A stretch of 63,960 bases of DNA, filler included, from Guillardia theta CCMP2712 (Eukaryota; Protista; Cryptophyta), in assembly GCF_000315625.1 (NCBI RefSeq). It is 5 parts of 5 records of this genome, joined end to end, with 100 filler letters (N's around TTAATTAATTAA, not from the genome) between each part and the next. Parts side by side here need not be neighbours in the genome. Positions count along the whole stretch, not along the records: positions 1 to 28,657 come from NW_005434538.1; 4 more parts are not named here. The stretch is one strand, 5' to 3'. The notes beneath the pieces were generated by a model, which had not been told where the DNA came from, did not search any database, and saw only the letters and a list, made by a program, of their open reading frames with translations. Each line of letters begins with the position of its first letter. Positions within the stretch are counted from its first letter, which is position 1. This document shows positions 1-28,758 of the stretch, piece by piece. The position numbers and the translations under genes were made by a program.

Positions 1-2475
1 GACATGCGACTTGGCGCGCGTAATGGCGACGTTGAGCCGGCGGTCGTCAGACAAGAAGCCAACCTGGAGGAGGGATGGAGGGAAGGTAGCAAGGGAGGGA
101 GAGAGGAAGGAGGAGGAGAGAGTGGTGGAGGTGAGAGTGGACGAGGAGGAGGACAGTACACAGGATGGGAGGGCGAAAGGAAGAGGAGCAGGAGAGAAGG
201 AGCATCATAAAGGAGGCGAAGGGAGAAGGAAAGGGATGGGGAGGGAGGAGAAACGCAGAGGTCAGTCCCACACCACTCAAGGCTACCTCTCACCTCTCTC
301 CTCGTGTTGCTCCTAACCAGCGACAGCAGCAGCGCGTCTTTCTCTCTCCCCTGGAACCCGTCCACAGTCCCGATCTCTACCCCCCGATACTTCTCCTTCA
401 GCCTGTCCCGCAGGACCGCCACCTGCCCGTTGTAGGGCGCCAGGACCCCTATGCTCTCCTCCTGCACCCCAGCAGCCAACAGCCTCTCGAGATGCTCCTG
501 TACCACCAGTGCCTCCCCTTCGTTCCTCGACGAGCCCTTCTCGTCCTGCTCCTCCTCCATCCCGCATCCGTCAGTGTCGATGACAACGAGGACGGAGGAA
601 GTCTCAGCCGTCTCCTTAACCCCCGGCAGCTCCAGCAGCGTCCTCCTCCTCACCCCATCTGCCGGCACCAGCCTTCCCCCGTACATGGCCCCCGAGCTCC
701 AGTCTGAGATGTCCTCGTGCATGCGGTACTGCACAGTCAACATCCTCATCACTTCCTCCCCGTGTTCCTCTCGCACCCTCTGGAACAGCGTCCTCCCGAG
801 CCCCTTGTCCGCCGCCTCCTTGCTGATGATGGTGGGGGCGAGCTGGCAGTCGTCCCCAGCTAGGACGAGCCTCTTGCTGCGGAGGATAGGGATCCAGCAG
901 GAAACTTCGACGGCCATGGCAGCCTCGTCGATGACGCAGAGGTCGAAGGCGTCGAGGGAGTTGAGGACGGAATCCGACGCTCCTGTGTTGGTGCAGAGAA
1001 CGACTTGTGCGCCCTTGATGATCTGGAANNNNNNNNNNNNNNNNNNNNNNNNNNNNNNNNNNNNNNNNNNNNNNNNNNNNNNNNNNNNNNNNNNNNNNNN
1101 NNNNNNNNNNNNNNNNNNNNNNNNNNNNNNNNNNNNNNNNNNNNNNNNNNNNNNNNNNNNNNNNNNNNNNNNNNNNNNNNNNNNNNNNNNNNNNNNNNNN
1201 NNNNNNNNNNNNNNNNNNNNNNNNNNNNNNNNNNNNNNNNNNNNNNNNNNNNNNNNNNNNNNNNNNNNNNNNNNNNNNNNNNNNNNNNNNNNNNNNNNNN
1301 NNNNNNNNNNNNNNNNNNNNNNNNNNNNNNNNNNNNNNNNNNNNNNNNNNNNNNNNNNNNNNNNNNNNNNNNNNNNNNNNNNNNNNNNNNNNNNNNNNNN
1401 NNNNNNNNNNNNNNNNNNNNNNNNNNNNNNNNNNNNNNNNNNNNNNNNNNNNNNNNNNNNNNNNNNNNNNNNNNNNNNNNNNNNNNNNNNNNNNNNNNNN
1501 NNNNNNNNNNNNNNNNNNNNNNNNNNNNNNNNNNNNNNNNNNNNNNNNNNNNNNNNNNNNNNNNNNNNNNNNNNNNNNNNNNNNNNNNNNNNNNNNNNNN
1601 NNNNNNNNNNNNNNNNNNNNNNNNNNNNNNNNNNNNNNNNNNNNNNNNNNNNNNNNNNNNNNNNNNNNNNNNNNNNNNNNNNNNNNNNNNNNNNNNNNNN
1701 NNNNNNNNNNNNNNNNNNNNNNNNNNNNNNNNNNNNNNNNNNNNNNNNNNNNNNNNNNNNNNNNNNNNNNNNNNNNNNNNNNNNNNNNNNNNNNNNNNNN
1801 NNNNNNNNNNNNNNNNNNNNNNNNNNNNNNNNNNNNNNNNNNNNNNNNNNNNNNNNNNNNNNNNNNNNNNNNNNNNNNNNNNNNNNNNNNNNNNNNNNNN
1901 NNNNNNNNNNNNNNNNNNNNNNNNNNNNNNNNNNNNNNNNNNNNNNNNNNNNNNNNNNNNNNNNNNNNNNNNNNNNNNNNNNNNNNNNNNNCGAATGAGG
2001 CCAGCACCGACAGGGCGAGCAGACCAAGGCAAAGCCGGCGTGGAAAATTTCATGGGTGAGAAGTGGGAATGCGGGACACGATGCGGTGATCAGCGTAGCC
2101 GAGAAGCAGACACGCGCCCGTCGGGCTGAGCGGTTGAATAGTTTGTAGGAGTGGTGCCGACAAGCATAGGCCGGGGCGGGAGCTTGCCAGCGAGGGACGC
2201 AGTTGTCCTAGCGCTGAGGTTGCAGGCGGGCAGAGCCCCCGCTGGAGCATCGGCCTCTCCCTCCCTCTCTCCCTCTCCCTCTCTCTCCCTCACTTTCCCT
2301 CCCTCCTTCTCTATCCTCTTCCTCCCTCTCCCTCACTTTCCCTCCCTCCTTCTCTATCCTCTTCCTCCCGATCCTGCTCCTGCTCCTGCTGAGTTCCTGC
2401 TCCTTCTTCACGCTACTTGCTTTTCGCTTCCCTCAACCTCCCTACTTCTTCTAACCGATTCATCATCATTATCCT

Positions 2476-2520
<45 letters not shown>

Positions 2521-2956
2521 TCATAGGGATCATGGTATCACCGGAGTCTAGGGCGACGACGATCTTATTCTCCATCACGCGATAGACCAGCCCGCGCAGC
2601 TCCTGCTCCTTGGAGGACGAGGAAGGCACGTGCGCCACGTTCGCCTTGCGCAGGGCGACGATATCCCCTCCTCCGAAGCAGTGAGCAGGAAGGAGCGGCT
2701 CCGAGCCGCTGCTCTCTGTCTTGCCCTTATCGTTCTTCTTCCCTCCTAGCGCCTTGCTGCGGCACAGGGTGACCAGGGTCCGCCCTCCCAGGCCATGCTT
2801 CCGTTCCGTCAGGACCAGGGAACCGATCACCACCCCCCTCTCCTCCAGCTGCTTCAGGCTCAGAGTCTCCTGCTCGTCTGCGGTCTGCGCCTCCTCTGCC
2901 ATGCGCTCCATGTCCACCAGCTCGAGCTGCTTCTGCGTCCATGCTTCCAGGTCCAT
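1..2956 (-). CDS. IGHMBP2: UPF1-like SF1 helicase, IGHMBP2/SMUBP-2/Hcs1 family (spliced, interrupted by gap, runs off left edge)
   Basis: N-terminus MDLEAWTQKQLELVDMER...KHGLGGRTLVTL...GDIVAL resembles IGHMBP2. Exon ~293-1028 reads FDLCVIDEAA, LAGDDCQLAP, LTVQYRMH, VLAPYNGQV, TVDGFQGREKD. Exon 1-63 reads VGFLSDDRRLNVAITRAK. Confidence 0.93.
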
Positions 2957-3890
2957 GGTGGGAACAACTGTAGGCGTCAGCCCTCCAATGCCAGCCTTCG
3001 TCGCCTCGACCCCGAGCGCGAAGAGCAGAGCGAGCAGCAGCAAGGACCTGATGCTGGTTGAGATAAGAAACAGCCGGATCGTCGTTCAGTTCTCCTCCTG
3101 ATGTTCGTGCTAGCGCTGTTCCCTGCCTCCTACTTGAAGATCCAAGTCACACTTGCCCTGCAGAACCCAAGAGCTCCTTCTCGTTGCTATCGTGCATCCA
3201 GTCAGTTAGGTTGCTCCTCCTTCACTCTCCTCCTCCTGATCCTCCTGATCCCCTACCTTCTCCTGCTCCTCTTGCTCCTGCTCCTGCTCCTGATCCTCCT
3301 GCTCCCCTACCTTCTCCTTCTCCTGCTCCTGCTCCTCCTGCTGATGTTCCTGCTCCTGCTGCTGCTGCTCCTCCTCCTCCTGCTGCTGCTGCTGCTCCTC
3401 CTTCTCTCCCTGCTCCTCTTCCTCCTGCTTCTATTCTTTCCTCCCCACCTCCCGACAGATTGTCAGCCAAGTGGAGGAAGGACTACCCCTACCCCTCGCT
3501 AGACGACATGTACCCCTCTATTATCTCACTTTGAGACTTGATTAAGGGGGTACTGTGCAATATAACCCCACCCCACCTGGGGTACAGGGGTGTGGCCGTA
3601 TCGTGGGAAATCCTATGGAGGAGACCAAGCGTGCGTGTAGGAGATGAGATACGAAAAGGAGTGAAGAGAGGTAGAGAGGAGGGAAGAGAGGAGAGGAGAG
3701 GAGAGGAGAAGAGAGGAGTGGAGAGGAGAAGAGAGGAGAGGAGAGGAGAGCAGAGGAGAGGAGAGGAGAGGAGAGGAGAGGAGTGGAGTGGAGTGGAGAG
3801 GAGAGGAGAGGAGAGGAGAGGAGAGGAGAGGAGAGGAGAGGAGTGCATAGAGGTGGATAGGAGCTCAGCTGAGGCATCGTTTTGTACGTG

Positions 3891-5030
3891 ATGCTCAAGG
3901 GATGGAGACTAGCATCACTGGTACAGCGCATTGATGTATCTTCAGCCCCTCGTCTTCGACTGATGCATACCTATCCTCGCACTTCACTCTCTCAACAGCA
4001 GATGAGGAGCATTTCTTCAGAGCGACACGTCGAGATGAGCTTGAGCGAGATCCACAATCTCACTCGCTCCGTCTTGATCCGGGAAGGCGCCAGCCCGGAG
4101 CATGCGGACAGTGTTGCTGACTGCGTCAGGAATGCTGAGAGGGACGGAGCCAGTTCCCATGGGATGTACCGAGTTCCAGGATACATCAGGTCCCTCCGAA
4201 GCGGAAAAGTCCGCGGAGATGCGGACCCGTCGCTGACCCGAGTCAACGATACGGTGATGAGGTGTGAGGGAGATCGCTCCTTCGTCTCTCTCGTTCACCG
4301 TCGATACCTCGAGCAAGTCATCCAGGTAGCTCGCCAGCACGGGGTTTGCATCTTCGCCGCCCGGAGGATCGCGCATTGGGCGGCGCTATGGCCGGAAACG
4401 GAGGCCATTGCGGATGCGGGGCTGGTAGCCTTTGCGTGCACGTCCTACCTGCCGACCGTCGCGCCCCATGGCACTCGCCATGCGTTCTTCGGGACGAACC
4501 CTGTCTCTTTCGCGTGGCCTCGACCCCTCCGGCCTCCTCTGGTGTTCGACATGGCGACTTCATCCTCCTCCCTCGGCGACTTGTCCTTGAAAGCGCGCAT
4601 GGGGGAGGAGGTGCCAGAAGGGACGGGGTTGGATGGGGAGGGAAAGGTGAGCAAGGATCCGTCGGAGATTCTCAAGGGTTGCCTCCTCCCCTTCGGAGGA
4701 TACAAGGGATCGCACCTCGCCATGGCAGTGGAGCTCCTGGCAGGGCCTCTGATCGGGGAGACCACGAGCTACGAGACGGCCAGGGAAGACAACCAGGACG
4801 GAGGTCCTCCCCTCGGAGGCGAGCTGATTGTTGCCATGTCGTTGGATATCATCTCAGGATCCAAGGAGAGTGCGGAGGCCGCGGAAAGATTTCTGAAGCA
4901 CCTTGAGGAGATGGAGAGTTTTGGAATGCCCGGGCAACGAAGGCACCAACGGAGGTTAGACCTGGGGAAGCGGAAAATCGATGCAGTCACGATGGCAGAG
5001 ATCGAAAAGTTGCTCGAATCATCGAAGTGA
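3891..5030 (+). CDS. Ldh_2 family NAD(P)-dependent oxidoreductase (DpkA/LhpD/ComC/AllD-like), intronless, possible mitochondrial presequence
   Basis: Motifs SHGMYRVPGY, HWAALWPE, FGTNPVSFAWP, PLVFDMATS, LLPFGGYKGSHLAMAVELLAG and MPGQRR. About 45-aa Arg/Ser/Leu-rich N-terminal extension. Confidence 0.92.
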   Translation: MLKGWRLASLVQRIDVSSAPRLRLMHTYPRTSLSQQQMRSISSERHVEMSLSEIHNLTRSVLIREGASPEHADSVADCVRNAERDGASSHGMYRVPGYIRSLRSGKVRGDADPSLTRVNDTVMRCEGDRSFVSLVHRRYLEQVIQVARQHGVCIFAARRIAHWAALWPETEAIADAGLVAFACTSYLPTVAPHGTRHAFFGTNPVSFAWPRPLRPPLVFDMATSSSSLGDLSLKARMGEEVPEGTGLDGEGKVSKDPSEILKGCLLPFGGYKGSHLAMAVELLAGPLIGETTSYETAREDNQDGGPPLGGELIVAMSLDIISGSKESAEAAERFLKHLEEMESFGMPGQRRHQRRLDLGKRKIDAVTMAEIEKLLESSK

Positions 5031-5964: not shown

Positions 5965-7539
5965 AATATGCAGTTGCTGCTTACTCTCTCGTCGACACAA
6001 CACTTTCAGCAAGGGAATTATCAAAAGTTCCTTCTGTCTTGTATCTTTCTGTCTTGTGTTTGTTCTTGCGCTCTCAAGTCCTTTGCGATGTTCGGGCTTG
6101 TCGACCTTCCTGTTAAATAACAACAATGTTTACTACACCCCGCTCGCCCCCCCCCCCACGCCCTCTCTCACTCCCGCTCGCGCTCGCACTACACTCTACT
6201 CTACTCTACTCTACTCGTACCNNNNNNNNNNNNNNNNNNNNNNNNNNNNNNNNNNNNNNNNNNNNNNNNNNNNNNNNNNNNNNNNNNNNNNNNNNNNNNN
6301 NNNNNNNNNNNNNNNNNNNNNCCCCCCCCCCCCCCCCCCCTTACAGTATCCAGATACTCACGCCACCCACCCCACCCATGAATCATTTTTGATTTCCACC
6401 AAATCGATCCTCGAAGCCTCTTGCCTACGGGTCAGGTACTTTTCCAAGAGGAGGCTCAATAGAATCTGCTTATACACCCGTGCGAGAAATGCGGACGCTA
6501 ACCAAGGCACACAGATTCCACCCCCTACCCCCAATTTGACATTGAGTGAAACTATCGAGAAAATCCTGTTTTCGTTCAACTGGAGTGATTTATCGAAAAA
6601 AGTCCTTTTCATAACTGCTTTTGGTATCCTAACCGGTATCCGTTGAAGGGTTGTCTTTCTGGGCTCTCTCGAATGTTTATCTGCATCCCAGGCTGTACCA
6701 AAGAAGAACATGACCAGCCTTGCTGACCAACGTATCTGCCTGCTGACTGGAACATGGTCACTATCTCCCCCGGGGTTGGCTGAGAGTACCCCCTAAATAT
6801 CATATGTGCTCGAGACCCACCCACCCTCAGCTTTGATTGTTTTTACCCCCGCCAGCCTCATTTGTTGAAAGAGACCATTGAACCAATGAAGTTCTATAGC
6901 ATAGATCATATGTAAAAGGGGGTAGTGCTGGTACATGCTGGATTTAGGTCTTTGATTTCGATCTGCCCCCTTCATCTCTACTAGACTACCCCACCCTCAT
7001 TGCGCCAACTAAGAAGAGAATGGCAAGTCTAAGCTCAAGTCACGCCAGCCCTATCTTGAGGTCGGGAGGTCCCGCGCCACCGGGGATGAGGTCTCACGGT
7101 CAGCATCACCAGCTCACAGACTTCTTCGGCGATGGGGTCCGGGTCTCTTGACCCCCGTATCGCCATAACTGAAAGGGTGGGGTGGAGCCTTACAGCCCTG
7201 CTGTAAAAGTCGCAATGGCACCCGTCGCTGGGGGTGGGTTGTGGGAGATCTTTGGACGGGTGGGTCGCATGAGCAATTGAGAGGTCCACGGATTGTCTGG
7301 ATAAAAGGGGTAGCCTTGTGATGACTAGGGACAAACCAGGGTAGGGTCATATCATTACCCGTGATTCTCAAATCAATAGAGGGGGTACTGATCGTGTACA
7401 AATATTAGATCCAAGGCCTGCACAGAATAGGGAGGGGTGGGGTGGGCGGTCATGTGAGGTGTGTGCCGTGAGTGGATGACGGCGACGCCGGGGTAAGTTC
7501 CGAGGAGATCCTTACAGGCAGAACAGTCAAAGGGCTGGA

Positions 7540-19012: not shown

Positions 19013-22000
19013 ATAGCGATAGCAGCAACGATGGAGATGACAATAGCGATGATTACCATGTCTGAGATTTTTTCGATGATTCAACCTGCAGGTAATGTGG
19101 ATGCAGACTTTTTCCGTCGTATCTGTCGATTACTCTCAACATCTTCCACCTGTGAAGTTTCCTCCTCCTCCTCCTCCTCCTCCTCCAGCGACTTCAGTCT
19201 TGTCTGGTCTTCTCCTTTGAGGACCTCAAGAAGCGCTGAGCCCTACTGCACGTGCGGGGGAGGAAGCGCAAGAGAGTCGATAGACCACGAGCTCCTGTGG
19301 TCAACGGAGGAGGAGGCGAGGAGGACGAGGAAGTTCTTGTTCGCTGCCGGAGGCCTTGGGGATCGCCGGGGGGAGGAGGGAGGAGGGAGGAGGGAGGAAG
19401 CGAGGTCAGACGGCAGCATCTTGCTCGTCGACGACCTGCTGCCTCGTAGGGTCTGGTCGGAGATTTTGTTTCCCCGCCATGGCTCCCAGATGCTCTTCGA
19501 TGCCTTTGAGAAGGTTTCCTTCACTGTGAGTGATGTGTTTGCTTCCCATGATTCGTCTCCTCCTCCTCCTTTCCCTCCTCCCTTCTTGGCTTCCACTGAC
19601 CCACTCCCTCTCTCCTCCTCTTCTACTTTGGTTTCTCGTCTCTTCTTTCCCTCCTCCTCTCCTCTTGCCTTGTCCTCTAACATCGTCAACCTGCATTAGA
19701 TTCGTGCTGTTGTTTACAACCTTGCAATGGGCCCCGACGCTTCCTATGCCTGCGTCTTTGTGGACGGGCAAGAGAAGGTTTCACTACTACCACCACCAAC
19801 TCCTCCTCCTCCACCACCACCACCATCACCGCCACCACCACAACCACCTCCCCCTCCTCCTCCTCTCCTCCTCCTCCACCACCACCATCACCATCACCAC
19901 ATCCTCCTTCATCTCCTCCATCTCCTCTCCTCCCCTCCTCCTCCTCCTCCTCCTCCTCCCCCTCGTCTCCCAGCCCCTTAACAATAGCATTAGGGATGCT
20001 CGCACGAGCCCGAGCTCGAGCTCAGCATGGATGATCCTGGTCTCGACCACTCATGGCATGTGATGGAGCTCAGGCTGTACGACAACATGAGCCAAGTCAG
20101 AAACTCCCTTCCTCCTTCTTTTTCCTCCTCCTTCTCTTCCCTGGTTCTCTTGTCGTTCTTTTGTCTTCTTGACTTTTTCTTGTCTTGTTTCTCAACCACC
20201 CCCACCGCCTCTTGCTTCTCCATTCTTCTTTATCTCATCGCATTCGCTAGGCTCTTCATTCCTCCTCTTCATTCTCTGAGTTCCGCACGGGCGTGAAACC
20301 ATGCTCGCAGCCGCTCCTGTCCTTCGTCGCAGAAGCCTTCCTGCAGAAGGAGGAGGAGGAGGAGGAGGAGGAGGAGGAGAAGGGGAGGGGGATGAAGGGC
20401 AAGGGGAAGGAGGAGCATCTACAATGCTTGTCTCACATTGCTGAGGGGCCGTTCCCTCTTGTTGTCAGCAGGGAGGAGGAGGAGGAGGAGTTTGTGTGCG
20501 TTTATGAGACTTCTTGGGCGTCTGTGGAGAGCAGCAGTGCTGTCAGTCTGATCCCTAATTACCGGCGATGGATGATGGTGAGGAGGAGAGGGAAAGGAAA
20601 TAAGGAGAGCAGGAGGGAGGGGAGGAAAGGGCAGGGCAAAGACAGGAGCAAGGAGGGAAAGAAGAGCAGGGCAGGGCAGTGAAGGACAGAGCAGAGCAGA
20701 GCAGAGCAGAGCAGAGCAGAGCAGAGCAGAGCAGAGCAGAGCAGAGCAGAGCAGAGCAGAGCAGAGCAGTTGGAGGAGGGAGCAGAGCAGTTGGAGGAGG
20801 GGAGGTCTGAACGAGTGACGATGTTCGAACAGGAAGGGAGCATGGCAAGTGGGCTGGTCCCGGCAATGCCAGCAGGGCTGGGATACCTTCTCCTTCCTCC
20901 CTCAACCGTCTTCTACCCAGGGCTGGTGCTGACCACCAGCTCCAACTCAAGCAGGCGCCTCCTCTACCAGCTGCAAGGAGCTTGCGACGACCGCAACCTC
21001 CGACCTCCCTTCTCCCGCGAGCAGCTGGGAGAGGAGAGGAGGGGAAGGAGGAGCAACCAGACCCTGGGGACCCTCCTCGTCCTGTCGCAGATCTGGGGTG
21101 AAAACTTCTACCACTGGATGGTAGAATGTCTCCCGCGCGTCTCCTTCCTCCCCTCCCACCTGCTTCTCTCGCCTGACCTCGTCATCGCCGTCCCAGCTCT
21201 CAACCCCTTCGTTGTGGCAACTTTGCGGCTACTGGGGGTGGAAAAGGAGAAGCTCCTGCCTTTCGCTCACCAGCACGTGTACCATGCCCGCGCCGTCCTC
21301 CTTCCCAGCTCGGGAGTCTGCGGGATCGGACCTCCTCCTCGCATCCTCCGCCGCACGTCAAGAGCTCTGCGTAAGGGACTGGACGCCATCGAAGCAGCGA
21401 GAGAAGCAGGAGAAGCAGCAGGAGCAGGAAGGGCCTGTGTGCTTGTGCAACGATCGGCGAATAACGGGAGAAACATTCTCAATCATGATGAAGTTCTCCT
21501 TGCTTTGAAAAGGACGTTCAAAGATGTACCCTCCTCCTCCTCCTCCTCGACCACCACCACTATCACCACCACATCCTTCTCCATCTCCTCCTTCGCCTCT
21601 TCCTCCTCCATTCTTCCTTCTTCTCCTCTTCCTCTATCTTCTTCATGGTTCGAGATTGTTTTCTCTCCCTCAAATTTGCCCACATCTCTCTTCTCTCCTC
21701 TCTAAACTTCCTCCTCTCCCCTTCTCTCACCTTCTCTCCTCCTCTCCGTGATAACTTGTTGCAGGTCTGCGACTGGAGGGTCATGAAGCCACTCTGGTAC
21801 CTCCTCCTCCTCCTCCTCCCATCATCCTCCTCCTCCCCCCCCTCCATGACGCCTATCTTTTTCTGCTCACCTATAGATCAGGGGAGGAGACAAGGAGCTG
21901 GGCATGCTTGCAGCAGCTTCTCTCTTCCGCCATGCGTCGCTCATCGTCGCTCCTCACGGCGGCTCACTCGCCAACCTCATGGTCAGGCTCCTCCTCCCCA

Positions 22001-22923: not shown

Positions 22924-24774
22924 TTACATGTACTTGGAATTCGACCCGAGGGTCCCGATCTTATTCTCAACATCCTCATCAGTTCCAGTGAAGATTTTCT
23001 TATCATCGCGGGGGAAGGAGTAGAAGTGGAAATCCGTCACGTGATCAGCAAGAGTCCTATCCCTTGTTGCCCCCACGAGTTGCCGCTCCCCCTCCTCCTG
23101 CCCCACCACTCTGTCCCGCAGCCCGTCTCTCCTGAGCTCCTTCCAGTACTTCCCGTTCACGATCCGCTGGTTCTCCTCCGACTCAGGCTCCAGCGCTCCC
23201 AAGTGATCCTCTACCATGCTTGCCTCCTCCTGCTTCGCCTTGGGCACAGGAACCTCCTCGTCCTCCCCTCCGATCTGATCATCTCCCAGTTCCTTGGTCG
23301 GGTAGTAGTCCTGGTAGAACTCCGTACCTGCCTTCTCCTGCGCCTCCTTCACCTCCTCTGCAGTGATCCTCCTCCCCTTCCCTTCGGGGTGGATCGGATG
23401 TCCGACCATGTTCGCCTCCACCTGGTGGTACCAGGGCCCGTACATGATCTTCTGGTTGGCGATGGAGTTGGGGGCAAGGTGGCCAAAGTGATCGACGCGG
23501 GGAGCGCTGGACGTAAGAAGGTCGTGCATCTCAGCATCGTCAGAGCTGACGTAGTCATCCAACGAGTTCATCAGTTGAGCATCCTCCAACCCCTCCTCCT
23601 CTCCCGTCCCCGTCGACTTGACCTCACCAGACTCGTCCTCCTTCTCCTCATCCTTGGCATAGCGGTTGTGTCTACCGGCCATGTACGAGTCATCCCCTTG
23701 GTAAACGAACTTGCCATGGTTGCAAGCTCCGGGAAAAGAGCAAGGTCCTCCCTTGTACTGGAGCCCAGCCGTCCACGTCTCCTCCCCATCCTTCGCCTGG
23801 CTGTCAAAGTTGTAGTCCTTCAAAGACTTCTGATGCCCTCGGACCACAGTCGAGTGATCACGAGACCCGTCGGAGAGGAAGCGGTTTAGAGCCTCGTCGA
23901 AGCGGATCCTTTCCTGGGACTCGCCTTTCCCGCTCCTCGACTTGGCCTTCACCAGTCTCATCGACTGCGTCTTCGGTGCCGCTCGCTCCTCCTCTTCGCG
24001 CGGGTCCTCGTTGTGGTGCCAGGAGTATCGCATCACGCCCGGGAAGTCGCTGGTGGGGATGAAGCTGATGTCAGTTCCCATCCCTTCCTGCCACGGCAGC
24101 CCTCGCATTCCCTCCAGTCCTGAGCTGCTTCTGCCCGCGGCCTCCTGCTCCTCGGAGAGCTCGTTGTTGTGCCAGGAGCCCTTCATGACCTCCGGGTAGT
24201 CGCTGGTGGGGACGAAGCTGATGTCAGTCCCCATGAGAGGGTGCCAGGGCAGACCCGTCGCCTCTCTCGCCTCTGCCTCCGACACCCGGGCAGAGGCAGC
24301 AGACGTGCTGGTGCTCGAGGCCTCCTTGGCAGAGGAGATGGCTCGCTGCACCTCGTTTCTCTCCTTCTCGACTTCCTTCTCGAGCGACTTGAGCCTCGCC
24401 TGCGTCTCCGCCAGCTTCCTGTCCTTGTTCTCCATCCTCTTCACCTCTGAGACTTGTCCAGGGATAGAGGCGAGAGCCGAGGTACCATCAGCGCGATACA
24501 TGGGCATGTTCGACCTGCATGCGGATCAGAGCACGACGATCACGAAGAGGCTCTGCTACATGACGGGAAACCACTGCAGGAGCTGCTCGTTGCTGCTCGT
24601 TGAGACCAGGAGCGCACAAGCAAGCAGCATGACTGACCCCACCTATGTAGCCCCGTCAGTTCACCATCCTCCCTCTCTGATTCTTCAATTTACCCCAACA
24701 ACCAGTCCAGTCGAGGTGCGATGACGAGGAGAGAAAGAATACGTCATGCTCGACGCGGAGCCGTAACTTGGCAT
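22924..24774 (-). CDS. Type II membrane protein with coiled coil and duplicated ~32-aa motif, unknown function
   Basis: Spliced start MPSYGSAS...TGLVVG-VGSVMLLACALLVS...QW, joined to a long exon 22924-24514. Confidence 0.75.
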
Positions 24775-26292
24775 GCCTGCCAACCGTCAAGTCACATGAA
24801 TCTTGGAACAGGATCCATCCTCGCCCCTCAGCCTCGTTCCCTTCCTCTCGTTCTTCATTCAAGAATTTGTGTTCACATTTCAAATTGAACTCCTCCATCT
24901 CCCACCAATGCTCTCTCGTTTAAGAGCGGGAAGTCTCCTAAACACTCTTGTAACCATCTCTCTTGACAGCTCTACTGGCTCATCCTGGGACTATAAAACT
25001 CGTCTTCGCTCTCTTTCTTCGCACCAACCCTTCTCCTACCTCTTCCTGTCTTCTCCTCCCTGTCTCTGTTCTCTCCTCCCTGTCTCTGTTCTCTCCTCCC
25101 TGTGCTCCTTCTCTCCTCCATTTTCTTCTCCCTGCCATGGCGACTCTTCAGCTAGTCGTTAGAACGGTTACAGTTCTACAAGTCTGTTGACGTTACAAAC
25201 CGTTGGAAATCTACCCTGCACCTTCTTGCCTTCGAACCACCCTACCCCTCTCAGCAATCGAGGATTCCACCCACCCCTAGTATGAAAAATAAAATGTGCC
25301 CCTCAAGTTCGATCAAGTACCCCTTCTTTAGATATCAAAAGTGAGGGTGATATGGGTAATCTGGATAGGTCAGCTGAAGGAGGGGTACAGCGGAAGGATT
25401 GGTGATGGTGGGTAGAACAACAGTTGTTACAAGGGGTGTAGGATTTTCATCAAAAGGGTAGGGTACGCGGGGATGGGGGCTGGGGACTTGGTGGGTACTT
25501 TATTGCTAATAAGTAGGGGTACATTGGATATTGCATGGGTACTTCGGGGGGGTGAGGAAACTAAAGGGGGCCGGTCATCAGGTGGGTCATTTTGATGCAC
25601 TTTGGAGGGGTGGGGCTAGTCTTTTGATGGGGAGGGTGTAAGAAATAGAGTCTGGATGGGGTAGTGCTGGTCGGGGGGCGAAGGAAAGAGCTCAGACGGA
25701 ACATGGCGAGCGAGGAGAGGAGAGGAAGAGGGGAGGATAGAACAAGGAGGTCAGATGATTAGTAGGATGATGAAATAGAGATGAATGCCGATGGCAAAAT
25801 GATTGCTGGAAATGAGCTGAAACTCAATCAGAGAGGAAGATGAGCAGCATTTGTTTGATTGCGATGAAATGGTTCTGAATCGAAATAGATCGGGGATATC
25901 TTGATCATGAGCTTTTGTGATACCTCAAGCCGATTCTTTCCTTATTGAACTACTAGGTCAAGCATGCCTTTGATATTTCAAACTTGAACTGTTGGAATGA
26001 TTGTGAAAAGTGAACAATGGTTGATTTGATTGGTTGATATTCCCATGGGCTTGGAGGGATCCTGTCAATGCTCTCGAGCTCCCTGTGTGCTCGCATGTCT
26101 GACTTCAACCTTGTTCATCACTGAATCACTTCGACAGGCCGGAGCATGAATCTTTGAATCCTTGTTTCAATTGTTGATATATTTGGCGTTGTTTGTTGCG
26201 TGGCTGCCCAAGAACGTTTGTGTTGGGTTTTGTTACCCACAAACTTGATGACAATGGTCATGCAAAGTGTTAAGTTTCCCCCTAGCTCCAGC

Positions 26293-28486
26293 ATGCAGAG
26301 GAGCGTGAGCAGATGTATGGACAGCAGGATTCTTCTCTCCCTCCTCCTCTTCTCAGCCCTGGCTGTAAAGACGTCAGGGGAATTCAAAGCTCTACGCGGA
26401 GGATCGTCAGCAACAATGACGGTTCGCTCCTCGTAACCCCTTTGTCTTTCCTCTCCTCCTAAACCCTAAACCCTTTTCCCTCCTCCTTGCTCCCTCCCTG
26501 TCTTCTTGTCAACTTGCTTCCTCCTCTCTCCTTCGCTCACGTCCTGGCATCGTTTGCTTTCCTTTCCTCTTCACCTCCTCCTCCTATCTCTCCCTCCTCG
26601 TCTTGCTCTTTGATACCTCTCACTCTCTTTGCGCTTCCCCTTCAGTTCCGCCCTGAGCTCAGAAAGACGTACTCGAGCACCATTCAGAAGCAGGACGCAG
26701 AGGACCTGGAGCGGCACAAGGCTCTTCTCCGCGTCCCTTCTCGCCCTTCCGTCCTGGGACAGGCAGATCGAGTCTCCTCCTCCTCGGAGAAGCCGAGGAG
26801 GCTGCAGCTCATCCGACCCGACATGGAGTCAAACGAGAATTGCGAGGGGAAAGTGCGGGAGATTGAGGACACCAAGAAGTTCAAGGCGTTCCAGGGTACT
26901 GGGCATGTGATGCTGTCACCCGAGGAGGTGAAAACACCAGATCTCTCTTGTGATGGATGAGTCGAGGAGGATGTGGGACGGGACGGGGGAGGGGGGCGAG
27001 AGGGAGGAGGAGAGTTGACATCTCTGATGGCGTTTGTGCGCAGGTGAAGTCTGCTTCTTCCACTGAAATGCACAAGTTGGCGATTGCGAGGCTTGCCAGG
27101 ATGCAGGTAAGGAGGAAGAGGAAGAGGAGGAGAAGGAGGAAGAGGAGGGTCAGGAGGAGGAGGAGGAGGAGGAGGAGGAGGAGGAGGAGGAGAGTGAGCA
27201 GTATGTGATTTCCGACTACAGATCAAGATCACTGGAGGCTCCAACTTGACAGTGTCCAAGGTTTGCATTCTTTTCGTGTTCACAGCACTTGTCCTTTTTT
27301 TTCAAATCTTTTCCTTTCTCTCACACATGGCTCAAGCTCCAAACCCTCTCCTCCGGCCCACTCCTCCTTAACTCCTCCTCTCCTGTTGGCTCCCCTTCCC
27401 GCACGTCCTCCACCTCTCCTCCCACCCTGATCCGTTCCGCCAGGACTCGGAGCTCATACGAGAGGAGGAAGCTCGCTTCAAGAGAACGTGAGGACGAGAT
27501 GGCTGCAGGAAGGGCCTGACGTGTCAACAGGCATATGACGGCTGTCAAATCTGTCAACGTGCAGCCCCCAGCAGAGCAGGTGACGGCTGGATGGTCTGAT
27601 AGCTTTCTCCTCCTTGCTGACTAGAGGGGGCAGCTGGAAGACGTCAAGGAGGCGATGGAGCAGACGGCCCGGCAGACGATCTCTGGAGAGAAGGAGGGGG
27701 TGGACGAGCACGGGAACACGTGGAAGGAGATCTGGTGAGACTGAGAGGGGGGGAGGGGGGGGGATGCAGACGAGGGGAAAGAGGTAGGAAGAAGCATAAG
27801 GAAGAGAGGGATGAGATGATCTGCATGGAGATGAAGGAGCAAGGACAGGAAGGAGAGTAGCAAGGAGGTTTTCTTTTCAATTGCTCTGTTGTCTGTTTCC
27901 TTGTCCCTCGCTAACATGACGCCAGGGGAGTTGATGAAGCCACAGGAAAGCGATTTGGATCCAAGGTGGAGAGAGAGGAGGAAGGAGCGAGGAAGGGGAG
28001 GAAAGAGGGAGGAACGAGAGGGGGAGAGAGAAATGAGGCAGGGGGAGAAGGAAGGAAGAGAACGTAAAGATGAGGAAGGAGACGGTCAAGTCTGTGCTGC
28101 TGAAGATGAGGCAGGTTGGGTACGACGGGCAGGGCGAGTGGCATGAGGAATGGACTCTGAGCAAGGATGGTCAGTTCGAGCTCACCGGAGGAAACACTCA
28201 GGTAAGAGGAGGAGGAGGACGAGGAGGACGAGGAGGACGAGGAGGACGAGGAGGAGGAGGAGGACGAGAGGTGGGGGGAGGGATGTTGAAGGGATATGAA
28301 GAGGGGGAGGACAGAAGAGGAGAGGAAGGGGAAGTTAAGGTTTTGTTTGAGGGAGGGGATGGAGGCCTAGGGGATGAGGAAGTTGAGAATTGCTGTCGTA
28401 AGAAACTCATGCAGGGGCATCGCTGGGGTCAGAGCTACGGAATCTTTGAGAATGGGACTAGTTGGAGAGAAAAATGGCTCGAGAAG
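26293..28486 (+). CDS. Signal-peptide protein with Trp-rich WxExW repeats, ESV1/LESV-like (3' end lost in gap)
   Basis: N-terminus MDSRILLSLLLFSALAVKTSGEFKALRGG. Exons 27625-27734, 27926-27965, 28115-28201 and 28415-28486 splice to GEKEGVDEHGNTWKEIWGVDEATGKRFGSKVGYDGQGEWHEEWTLSKDGQFELTGGNTQGHRWGQSYGIFENGTSWREKWLEK. Confidence 0.65.
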
Positions 28487-28657
28487 GTGCAGACTCCTCC
28501 TCCTCCTCCTCCTCCTCCTCCTCCTCCTCCCTCCTCCTCCTCCTCCCTCCTCCTCCTCCCTCCTCCTCCTCCTCCCTCCTTCTCCTCCTCCTCCCCCTCC
28601 TCCCTCCTTCTCCTCCTCCTACTCCTCCTCCTCCTCTCGTTCCCTCCTCCTCCCACT

Positions 28658-28758
28658 NNNNNNNNNNNNNNNNNNNNNNNNNNNNNNNNNNNNNNNNNNN
28701 NTTAATTAATTAANNNNNNNNNNNNNNNNNNNNNNNNNNNNNNNNNNNNNNNNNNNNT
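28658..28758. other. Assembly gap with TTAATTAATTAA linker (also near 44927, 52296 and 59561)
   Basis: Identical six-frame-stop 12-mer centred in N runs. Confidence 0.97.

Follow-up and report, generated by a model that had tools for sequence, protein, structure and literature searches.

Does a gene broken into small exons in the cryptophyte alga Guillardia theta encode a relative of the plant starch-binding proteins EARLY STARVATION1 (ESV1) and LIKE ESV1 (LESV), and might its product act where cryptophytes deposit their starch? The question arises from 63,960 nucleotides of G. theta CCMP2712 DNA, referred to throughout as the window, whose first piece (positions 1 to 28,657) derives from record NW_005434538.1. 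An original prediction, made from the DNA alone, had seen within 26293-28486 four small exons with repeated Trp-rich motifs, preceded by a hydrophobic N-terminus and an LRGG motif, and had read them as part of a starch-organising homologue or analogue of ESV1/LESV in the periplastid compartment. Cryptophyte starch is semicrystalline and is made in the remnant cytoplasm of a red-algal endosymbiont, as described in the main text of a recent preprint (10.64898/2026.09.25.754361).

Here, we combine transcript alignment, family searches and structure prediction to describe this locus. Positions 26136-28657 (+ strand) probably belong to a nuclear cryptophyte gene with many introns, of which they hold the 5′ half, and which encodes a 676-residue protein of the LESV/ESV1 family, designated P0008. 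The protein has three parts: an N-terminal leader, a lineage-specific region of ~180 residues, predicted to be largely disordered with some helices, and a Trp-rich sheet domain of ~415 residues. With its gene model checked and a full-length product, orthologues, leader and structural model described, this candidate is open to direct testing.

Transcript evidence and the full-length product

Transcript contigs of three runs (X1, X2 and X3, bearing two organism labels) were aligned over 25000-28657. In each run, one long contig leaves out seven intervals (26422-26645, 26928-27043, 27261-27443, 27488-27530, 27580-27633, 27735-27925 and 27966-28114), all with GT..AG ends. The JGI transcript contig L001 aligns with the window in ten blocks, all at 100 % identity, and confirms two further junctions, 27106/27222 and 28201/28415, which were lost from the X1-X3 alignment because of purine-rich triplet repeats in those introns. 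At least ten exons inside the window contribute to the spliced mRNA, and the nine introns between these ten are all GT..AG and 43-224 nt long. Sampling 6 % of a raw RNA run, X13, yielded just 3 reads, so strand and expression level rest on the contigs and on GT..AG orientation only.

The ten exons joined form an open frame of 317 codons, identical to residues 1-317 of P0008. The piece stops within intron 10, of which 28487..28657 is present, beginning with a GT donor that is placed by L001 and the window sequence. The last 359 codons are known from L001:1060-2139 only. P0008 was reached stepwise, from P0003 through P0006, and the recovery of the cDNA past 28658 through L001 supplies the full-length product that the original prediction had called for, in the reading frame that it had chosen.

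The four small exons of that prediction are exons 7-10 and are all transcript-supported: exon 7 (27634-27734, residues 218-251), exon 8 (27926-27965, 40 nt, residues 251-264), exon 9 (28115-28201, residues 265-293) and exon 10 (28415-28486, residues 294-317). The gene model around them was incomplete, as the piece holds ten exons and two micro-exons had been missed, exon 5 (27444-27487, 44 nt, residues 187-201) and exon 6 (27531-27579, 49 nt, residues 201-217). Its start and the end of its second exon also required revision. The first in-frame ATG of the transcript lies at 26248, 15 codons upstream of the ATG at 26293 (codon 16; another is at codon 24), and exon 2 ends at 26927, the donor used lying 31 nt past the first candidate GT (26896).

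Exon 6 sits between introns of only 43 nt (27488-27530) and 54 nt (27580-27633), and introns of this size combined with exons of 39, 40, 44 and 49 nt would defeat most ab initio gene finders. Four introns contain long purine- or pyrimidine-rich tracts, mostly triplet repeats (27110-27192, 27968-28060, 28206-28268 and 28494-28653), including (AGG)n of ~28 copies, (GAG)n of ~21 copies and, in intron 10 at 28494-28653, (CTC)n of ~52 copies; the tract at 27968-28060 is an 11-nt purine-rich repeat. Some of these repeats are in frame with the adjoining exons and create false long open reading frames (ORFs), such as that at 28070-28705.

Family membership and the predicted sheet

Four members of the family (P0008, P0010, P0012 and P0033, three of the four full-length) match the Pfam 38.1 family PF28232 (PF28232.1) in the precomputed class of E ≤ 1e-5. 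The name of this family, 'LESV', was taken from ESM-Atlas output, and the Pfam set that we scanned directly lacked PF28232. P0010 is a relative with 75 % identity over the C-terminal region searched, and P0033 is a Teleaulax-type orthologue. Language-model features point in the same direction: the three ESM-Atlas clusters nearest to P0008 are all LESV, from green algae and land plants (0.89, 186/256 features), and the ten best named matches all belong to the LESV family. For residues 236-500 alone the nearest clusters are again LESV, at 0.83, which we treat as a lead only. Homology to the LESV/ESV1 family, as had been proposed, is thereby supported at the level of sequence, and a predicted antiparallel all-β fold agrees with it. 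We lean towards calling P0008 LESV-like rather than ESV1-like, because the predicted layout of its N-terminal half resembles in general terms that reported for LESV and it has no ESV1-type proline-rich tail; residues 651-676 contain 3 Pro, and the orthologues end directly after the sheet (...W-H-x-R-A-W).

The family as found here is cryptophyte, since its orthologue clusters come from Teleaulax amphioxeia (EukProt) and Baffinella frigidus (NCBI, also labelled Cryptophyta sp. CCMP2293), in keeping with the cryptophyte host of the original prediction. A metagenome scan gave eight cryptophyte-type loci only. Searching representatives with exon 2 returned N-terminal orthologue fragments only, at 39-48 % identity, and when the C-terminal region was used in a word-seeded search, the only match was a close relative, with no plant LESV.

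The composition of the sheet domain is highly skewed. Residues 236-650 contain 8.4 % Trp, 14.9 % Gly, 14.2 % Glu and 6.3 % Asp (20.5 % Asp+Glu), with 14 % basic residues, whereas residues 1-235 contain 0 % Trp. The strict pattern W-x-[DE]-x-W occurs 12 times in residues 236-650, with ~0.6 expected from composition, and 3 of the 12 fall within the 82 residues encoded in the window. The domain is internally repetitive, its two halves aligning with each other at 25-28 % identity (E down to 4e-13). All three motif peptides read from the DNA are present exactly: GVDEHGNTWKEIW at residues 239-251, where the sheet begins in exon 7 and the final Trp codon is split by the following intron; GYDGQGEWHEEW at residues 266-277 in exon 9; and GIFENGTSWREKW at residues 302-314 in exon 10. 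Exon 8 encodes the predicted partner strand of the first hairpin.

AlphaFold2, run on residues 236-676 with six cryptophyte sequences, predicts a nearly pure β-hairpin meander of ~27 long antiparallel strands (mean predicted local distance difference test score, pLDDT, 83). In this model the domain consists of β-hairpin repeats with W-x-(E/D)-x-W on one strand of each, and all 12 strict motifs lie within predicted strands, one per hairpin. An antiparallel sheet with aromatic and acidic residues on its strands, as the original prediction anticipated, is what the model predicts. Residues i, i+2 and i+4 of a β-strand face the same side, with i and i+4 ~13.6 Å apart, so each motif would contribute to a pair of Trp rows spaced ~14 Å apart and flanking an acidic row. 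Such strips would resemble those of plant ESV1/LESV, an estimate based on spacing along single strands.

Structure searches were less specific. In an Atlas shape search the best match was an unnamed cluster (template-modelling score, TM, 0.57), and a streptophyte LESV cluster matched over 224 aligned residues (model residues 113-369) at TM 0.40. No relative with a solved structure was found by sequence search of the PDB. Foldseek and VIA-align comparisons with solved chains gave generic β-meanders only, with low TM or high root-mean-square deviation (rmsd), among them OspA, the CPAP G-box and Rhs/teneurin shells, and outer-membrane barrels (Z 10-15, rmsd 8-11 Å).

The leader, the RGGS motif and the proposed role

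The N-terminus looks like a bipartite leader, that is, a putative signal peptide followed by a transit-like stretch. Both elements seen in the original prediction are present in exon 1 (26248..26421, residues 1-58): the hydrophobic core ILLSLLLFSALAV (26329..26367, residues 28-40; 11-residue Kyte-Doolittle mean 2.75) and ALRGGS (26389..26406, residues 48-53). A hydrophobic core (11-residue Kyte-Doolittle mean 2.3-3.0) is present in each of the seven N-termini that extend this far, with small residues at -3/-1 of possible cleavage sites (e.g. ALA↓VK). If translation starts at 26248, the n-region is long, at 27 residues. After the core come 15-53 residues rich in Ser, Thr, Ala, Pro and Arg, with 2-6 Lys+Arg and 0-2 Asp+Glu, which end in RGGS in 7/7 sequences regardless of their length.

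RGGS stands out within an otherwise variable, disordered leader, and is found at 26389-26406 of the window and in P0029, P0017, P0002, P0007, P0005 and P0001. Its context varies from ALRGGS in G. theta to (V)LR(I/M)RGGS(A/T)(A/Y) in four orthologues (Teleaulax-type VLR(I/M)RGG↓S) and, in two more distant sequences including one from Baffinella, to H(L/I)RGGSAAV. In P0007 the segment LVLRIRGG is identical in 7 of 8 residues to the ubiquitin C-terminal tail, LVLRLRGG. The motif could be a processing or recognition site, and judging by this likeness it could be cut by a deubiquitinase-like protease of the periplastid import machinery derived from endoplasmic-reticulum-associated degradation. Cleavage at RGGS, if true, would define a maturation signal for periplastid-resident proteins. 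Our literature search found no paper linking an 'LRGG' motif to periplastid import.

In a nine-sequence alignment of the N-terminal half, which accounts for most of what exons 1-10 encode, the conserved islands are the hydrophobic segment, RGGS and then three blocks: L-x-x-H-K-A-x-L-K...R-P-x-L-L; K-P-x-x-L-S-L-V-x-P; and a 40-residue block, K-K-F-K-A-F-Q-G-x-G-x-V-x-L-S...M-H-x-L-A-x-A-R-L-A-R. In G. theta, exon 2 (26646..26927, residues 59-152) carries the conserved L-x-x-H-K-A-L-L-R, K-P-x-x-L-x-L-(V/I)-x-P and K-K-F-K-A-F-Q-G, and exon 3 (27044..27106, residues 153-173) carries S-x-M-H-K-L-A-x-A-R-L-A-R, which is conserved in the alignment, predicted as a helix and confirmed in L001. AlphaFold2 predicts four helices in this half (69-86, 150-177, 188-202 and 215-229) and disorder elsewhere, at a mean pLDDT of 56.

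Gould et al. are said to have reported in 2006 that periplastid proteins are marked by the absence of an aromatic residue at the +1 position of the transit peptide. In most orthologues no plausible +1 position is occupied by Phe, and the leader is consistent with periplastid targeting. In cryptophytes and diatoms, import into the stroma depends on an aromatic residue at +1 (PMC3017844).

From these features a route and a role can be proposed. The hydrophobic leader would carry the precursor into the lumen of the endoplasmic reticulum around the complex plastid, and the transit-peptide-like stretch, being basic, hydroxylated, acid-poor and free of a clear aromatic +1, could then mediate passage across the periplastid membrane. 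The protein would stay in the periplastid compartment, the site of cryptophyte starch synthesis, and its large antiparallel sheet would display Trp rows ~14 Å apart (i to i+4) with acids between. These rows might dock and align neighbouring amylopectin double helices, so that the transition from soluble glucan to semicrystalline starch would be promoted or stabilised, as proposed for plant LESV and ESV1.

Several observations weigh against this account. The PF28232 evidence is a precomputed record, given as a class rather than as match coordinates and a score, and the link to the family runs through profile records and features. The sheet model derives from a six-sequence alignment, and its Atlas structural match to LESV falls below TM 0.5. 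Glucan binding by the Trp-rich domain is suggested by analogy with the plant proteins, and a periplastid location for P0008 by its leader sequence. That leader is itself imperfect, with a core-to-RGGS stretch of only 15 residues in Guillardia, including one Glu; a Phe at +2 of one possible Guillardia cleavage site (TSG↓EF); and an orthologue, P0002, that could be cut as SLA↓FE to expose an aromatic +1. Moreover, in the assembled transcript of the closest relative (L010, encoding P0012) a signal peptide is missing and an in-frame stop lies upstream. In L010:1-330 the protein begins MELGAGTRLNSS... and has RLNSS in place of RGGS, which may reflect faulty assembly at the 5′ end, or a leaderless isoform or species.

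The short Guillardia transit-like stretch, the Phe near possible cleavage sites in Guillardia and P0002 and the leaderless L010 would all suit a true LESV/ESV1 protein that acts outside the periplastid compartment, either in the stroma or, with another glycan as its ligand, within the secretory pathway or on the cell surface. We nevertheless consider this distinctly unlikely, as cryptophyte starch is found only in the periplast according to the preprint text (10.64898/2026.09.25.754361), starch glucan is the only known ligand of the family (PMC10219597), and most orthologues lack an aromatic residue at any plausible +1, which stromal import needs (PMC3017844). Within the compartment, the protein could instead attach to granules once they have crystallised and protect them against glucan-water dikinase and amylases, an ESV1-like control of degradation in place of seeding. 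ESV1 and LESV share the sheet domain and their roles are not separable by sequence alone (PMC10219597), and in its passages on the cryptophyte clade the preprint speaks only of 'ESV-LESV' (10.64898/2026.09.25.754361). Such a role is possible but unlikely, given the tail of residues 651-676 without proline richness, an N-terminal region that is conserved and, as in LESV, predicted to contain helices, nearest Atlas clusters for residues 55-235 that are full-length LESV, if weakly so (0.77), and the reported lack of debranching enzymes in cryptophytes, the situation in which seeding of the LESV type is most important.

A convergent Trp-rich repeat protein with no relation to ESV1/LESV, e.g. a MORN-like protein or a β-barrel membrane protein, is very unlikely indeed. 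It would fit the generic β-meanders returned from solved chains and the blank direct Pfam scan, in which neither exon peptides nor full-length proteins matched any other family in a set without PF28232, but it leaves the PF28232 LESV matches of four family members unaccounted for. MORN (PF02493), the alternative named in the original prediction, gave no match for the exon peptides, P0006 and P0003 even at E ≤ 10, nor for P0008 and P0009 at E ≤ 1. A membrane β-barrel was rejected on composition, a domain with 20 % acidic and 14 % basic residues being unfit for one.

Remaining features and neighbouring genes

Transcript contigs of the LESV-like gene start at 26136-26148, giving a 5′ untranslated region at 26136..26247 (+) that contains an upstream ORF of three codons (ATG AAT CTT TGA, 26146-26157). 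Exon 4 (27222..27260, 39 nt, residues 174-186), like exons 5 and 6 after it, is placed by transcripts. Other contigs lie further upstream, with a word depth of 269 at 25000-25081 (run X1, record 1), which indicates a separate transcription unit, and of ~7 at 25684-25957, possibly a low-level intergenic transcript. Beyond the 3′ end of the piece, L001:2246-4216 (-) holds a convergent gene for a 656-residue Na+/Ca2+ exchanger family protein (PF01699), ~100 nt past the stop codon of the LESV-like gene. Both genes occur in one transcript contig, and their 3′ ends therefore probably overlap or abut.

Elsewhere in the window, a single open frame encoding 382 residues at 3882-5030 (+) matches the malate/L-lactate dehydrogenase family Ldh_2 (E 2e-83). 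Two exon-sized ORFs, each part of a multi-exon gene, match Glycosyltransferase 61 (20770-21705, +; E 3e-8) and the 1B domain of SMUBP-2/HCS1 helicases (2408-3043, -; E 8e-21). An uninterrupted 527-residue ORF at 22924-24507 (-) encodes an acidic, Lys/Glu-rich product with internal repeats, e.g. two copies of GLPW...GTDISF(V/I)PTSD(Y/F)P, and has no Pfam match. Runs of N at ~1030-1990 and ~6220-6330 are assembly gaps and generate long artificial X-filled ORFs.

Comparison with known starch-organising proteins

Members of this family in cryptophytes have been reported before. The bioRxiv preprint of October 2026 (10.64898/2026.09.25.754361) records ESV/LESV for cryptophytes, Guillardia theta among them, as a starch "chaperone" of the periplast, and its text reports that cryptophytes lack isoamylase, pullulanase and indirect debranching enzyme. 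Because no known debranching enzyme is present, ESV/LESV and a host-derived phosphorylase are presented there as the only candidates for making starch crystalline. The preprint text also suggests a green-algal origin and describes the cryptophyte ESV/LESV clade as 'more distantly related'. The role proposed here, a polysaccharide chaperone in the periplast of algae without debranching enzymes, is the same; the gene family is almost certainly the same, and the Guillardia gene of the preprint is very probably the gene in the window. With the family and its presence in cryptophytes already in the preprint, and Pfam 38.1 matching P0008, the assignment is a rediscovery, not a discovery.

What is possibly undescribed is the predicted elongated sheet, ~1.7x that of plants, and the ubiquitin-tail-like RGGS motif. 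The terms 'signal peptide' and 'bipartite' do not occur in the main text of the preprint, and its ESV/LESV passages discuss neither sheet length nor an RGGS motif (10.64898/2026.09.25.754361). That both would prove new together, with a longer Trp-striped sheet aiding starch crystallisation and RGGS serving as a periplastid processing site, is decidedly improbable. If true, a sheet of ~27 rather than 16 strands could align more double helices at once, and the longer sheet might explain how cryptophyte starch crystallises without a known debranching enzyme.

Among proteins of solved structure, OspA and the CPAP/TCP10 G-box offer an architectural analogy only, sharing a long β-hairpin meander without a conventional hydrophobic core. 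They have no sequence relation to the cryptophyte protein (3-11 % identity), match its model at low TM or high rmsd, and lack Trp/acid striping.

The plant proteins are much closer. Arabidopsis ESV1 and LESV have a sheet of 16 strands, ~70 Å long, that binds starch (Liu et al. 2023, PMC10219597), on which aromatic strips 14 Å apart with acids between are proposed to form a template aligning amylopectin double helices. In ESV1 the N-terminus is disordered and little conserved and the C-terminal region is rich in proline, whereas LESV, but not ESV1, has helices in its partly disordered N-terminal region (PMC10219597). The cryptophyte protein shares with ESV1 the Trp-rich sheet domain and the presumed glucan-binding surface, and differs from it in having a conserved N-terminal region and no Pro-rich tail.

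With plant and green-algal LESV (PF28232) the resemblance extends to the profile match, a Trp/acid-rich domain predicted as a free-standing antiparallel sheet, W-x-(E/D)-x-W on strands (from which the ~14 Å spacing of aromatic rows would follow), conserved islands and predicted helices N-terminal to the sheet, a putative organelle-targeting leader and a starch-making host. Three differences set the cryptophyte protein apart from LESV. Its N-terminal conserved blocks were found in cryptophyte-type sequences only in the searches made here; a putative signal peptide and transit-like stretch replace the chloroplast transit peptide, with the periplastid compartment as the expected location in place of the stroma; and its modelled sheet region, of ~415 residues and ~27 long strands, is about 1.7x as long as the 16-strand, ~70 Å sheet of Arabidopsis.

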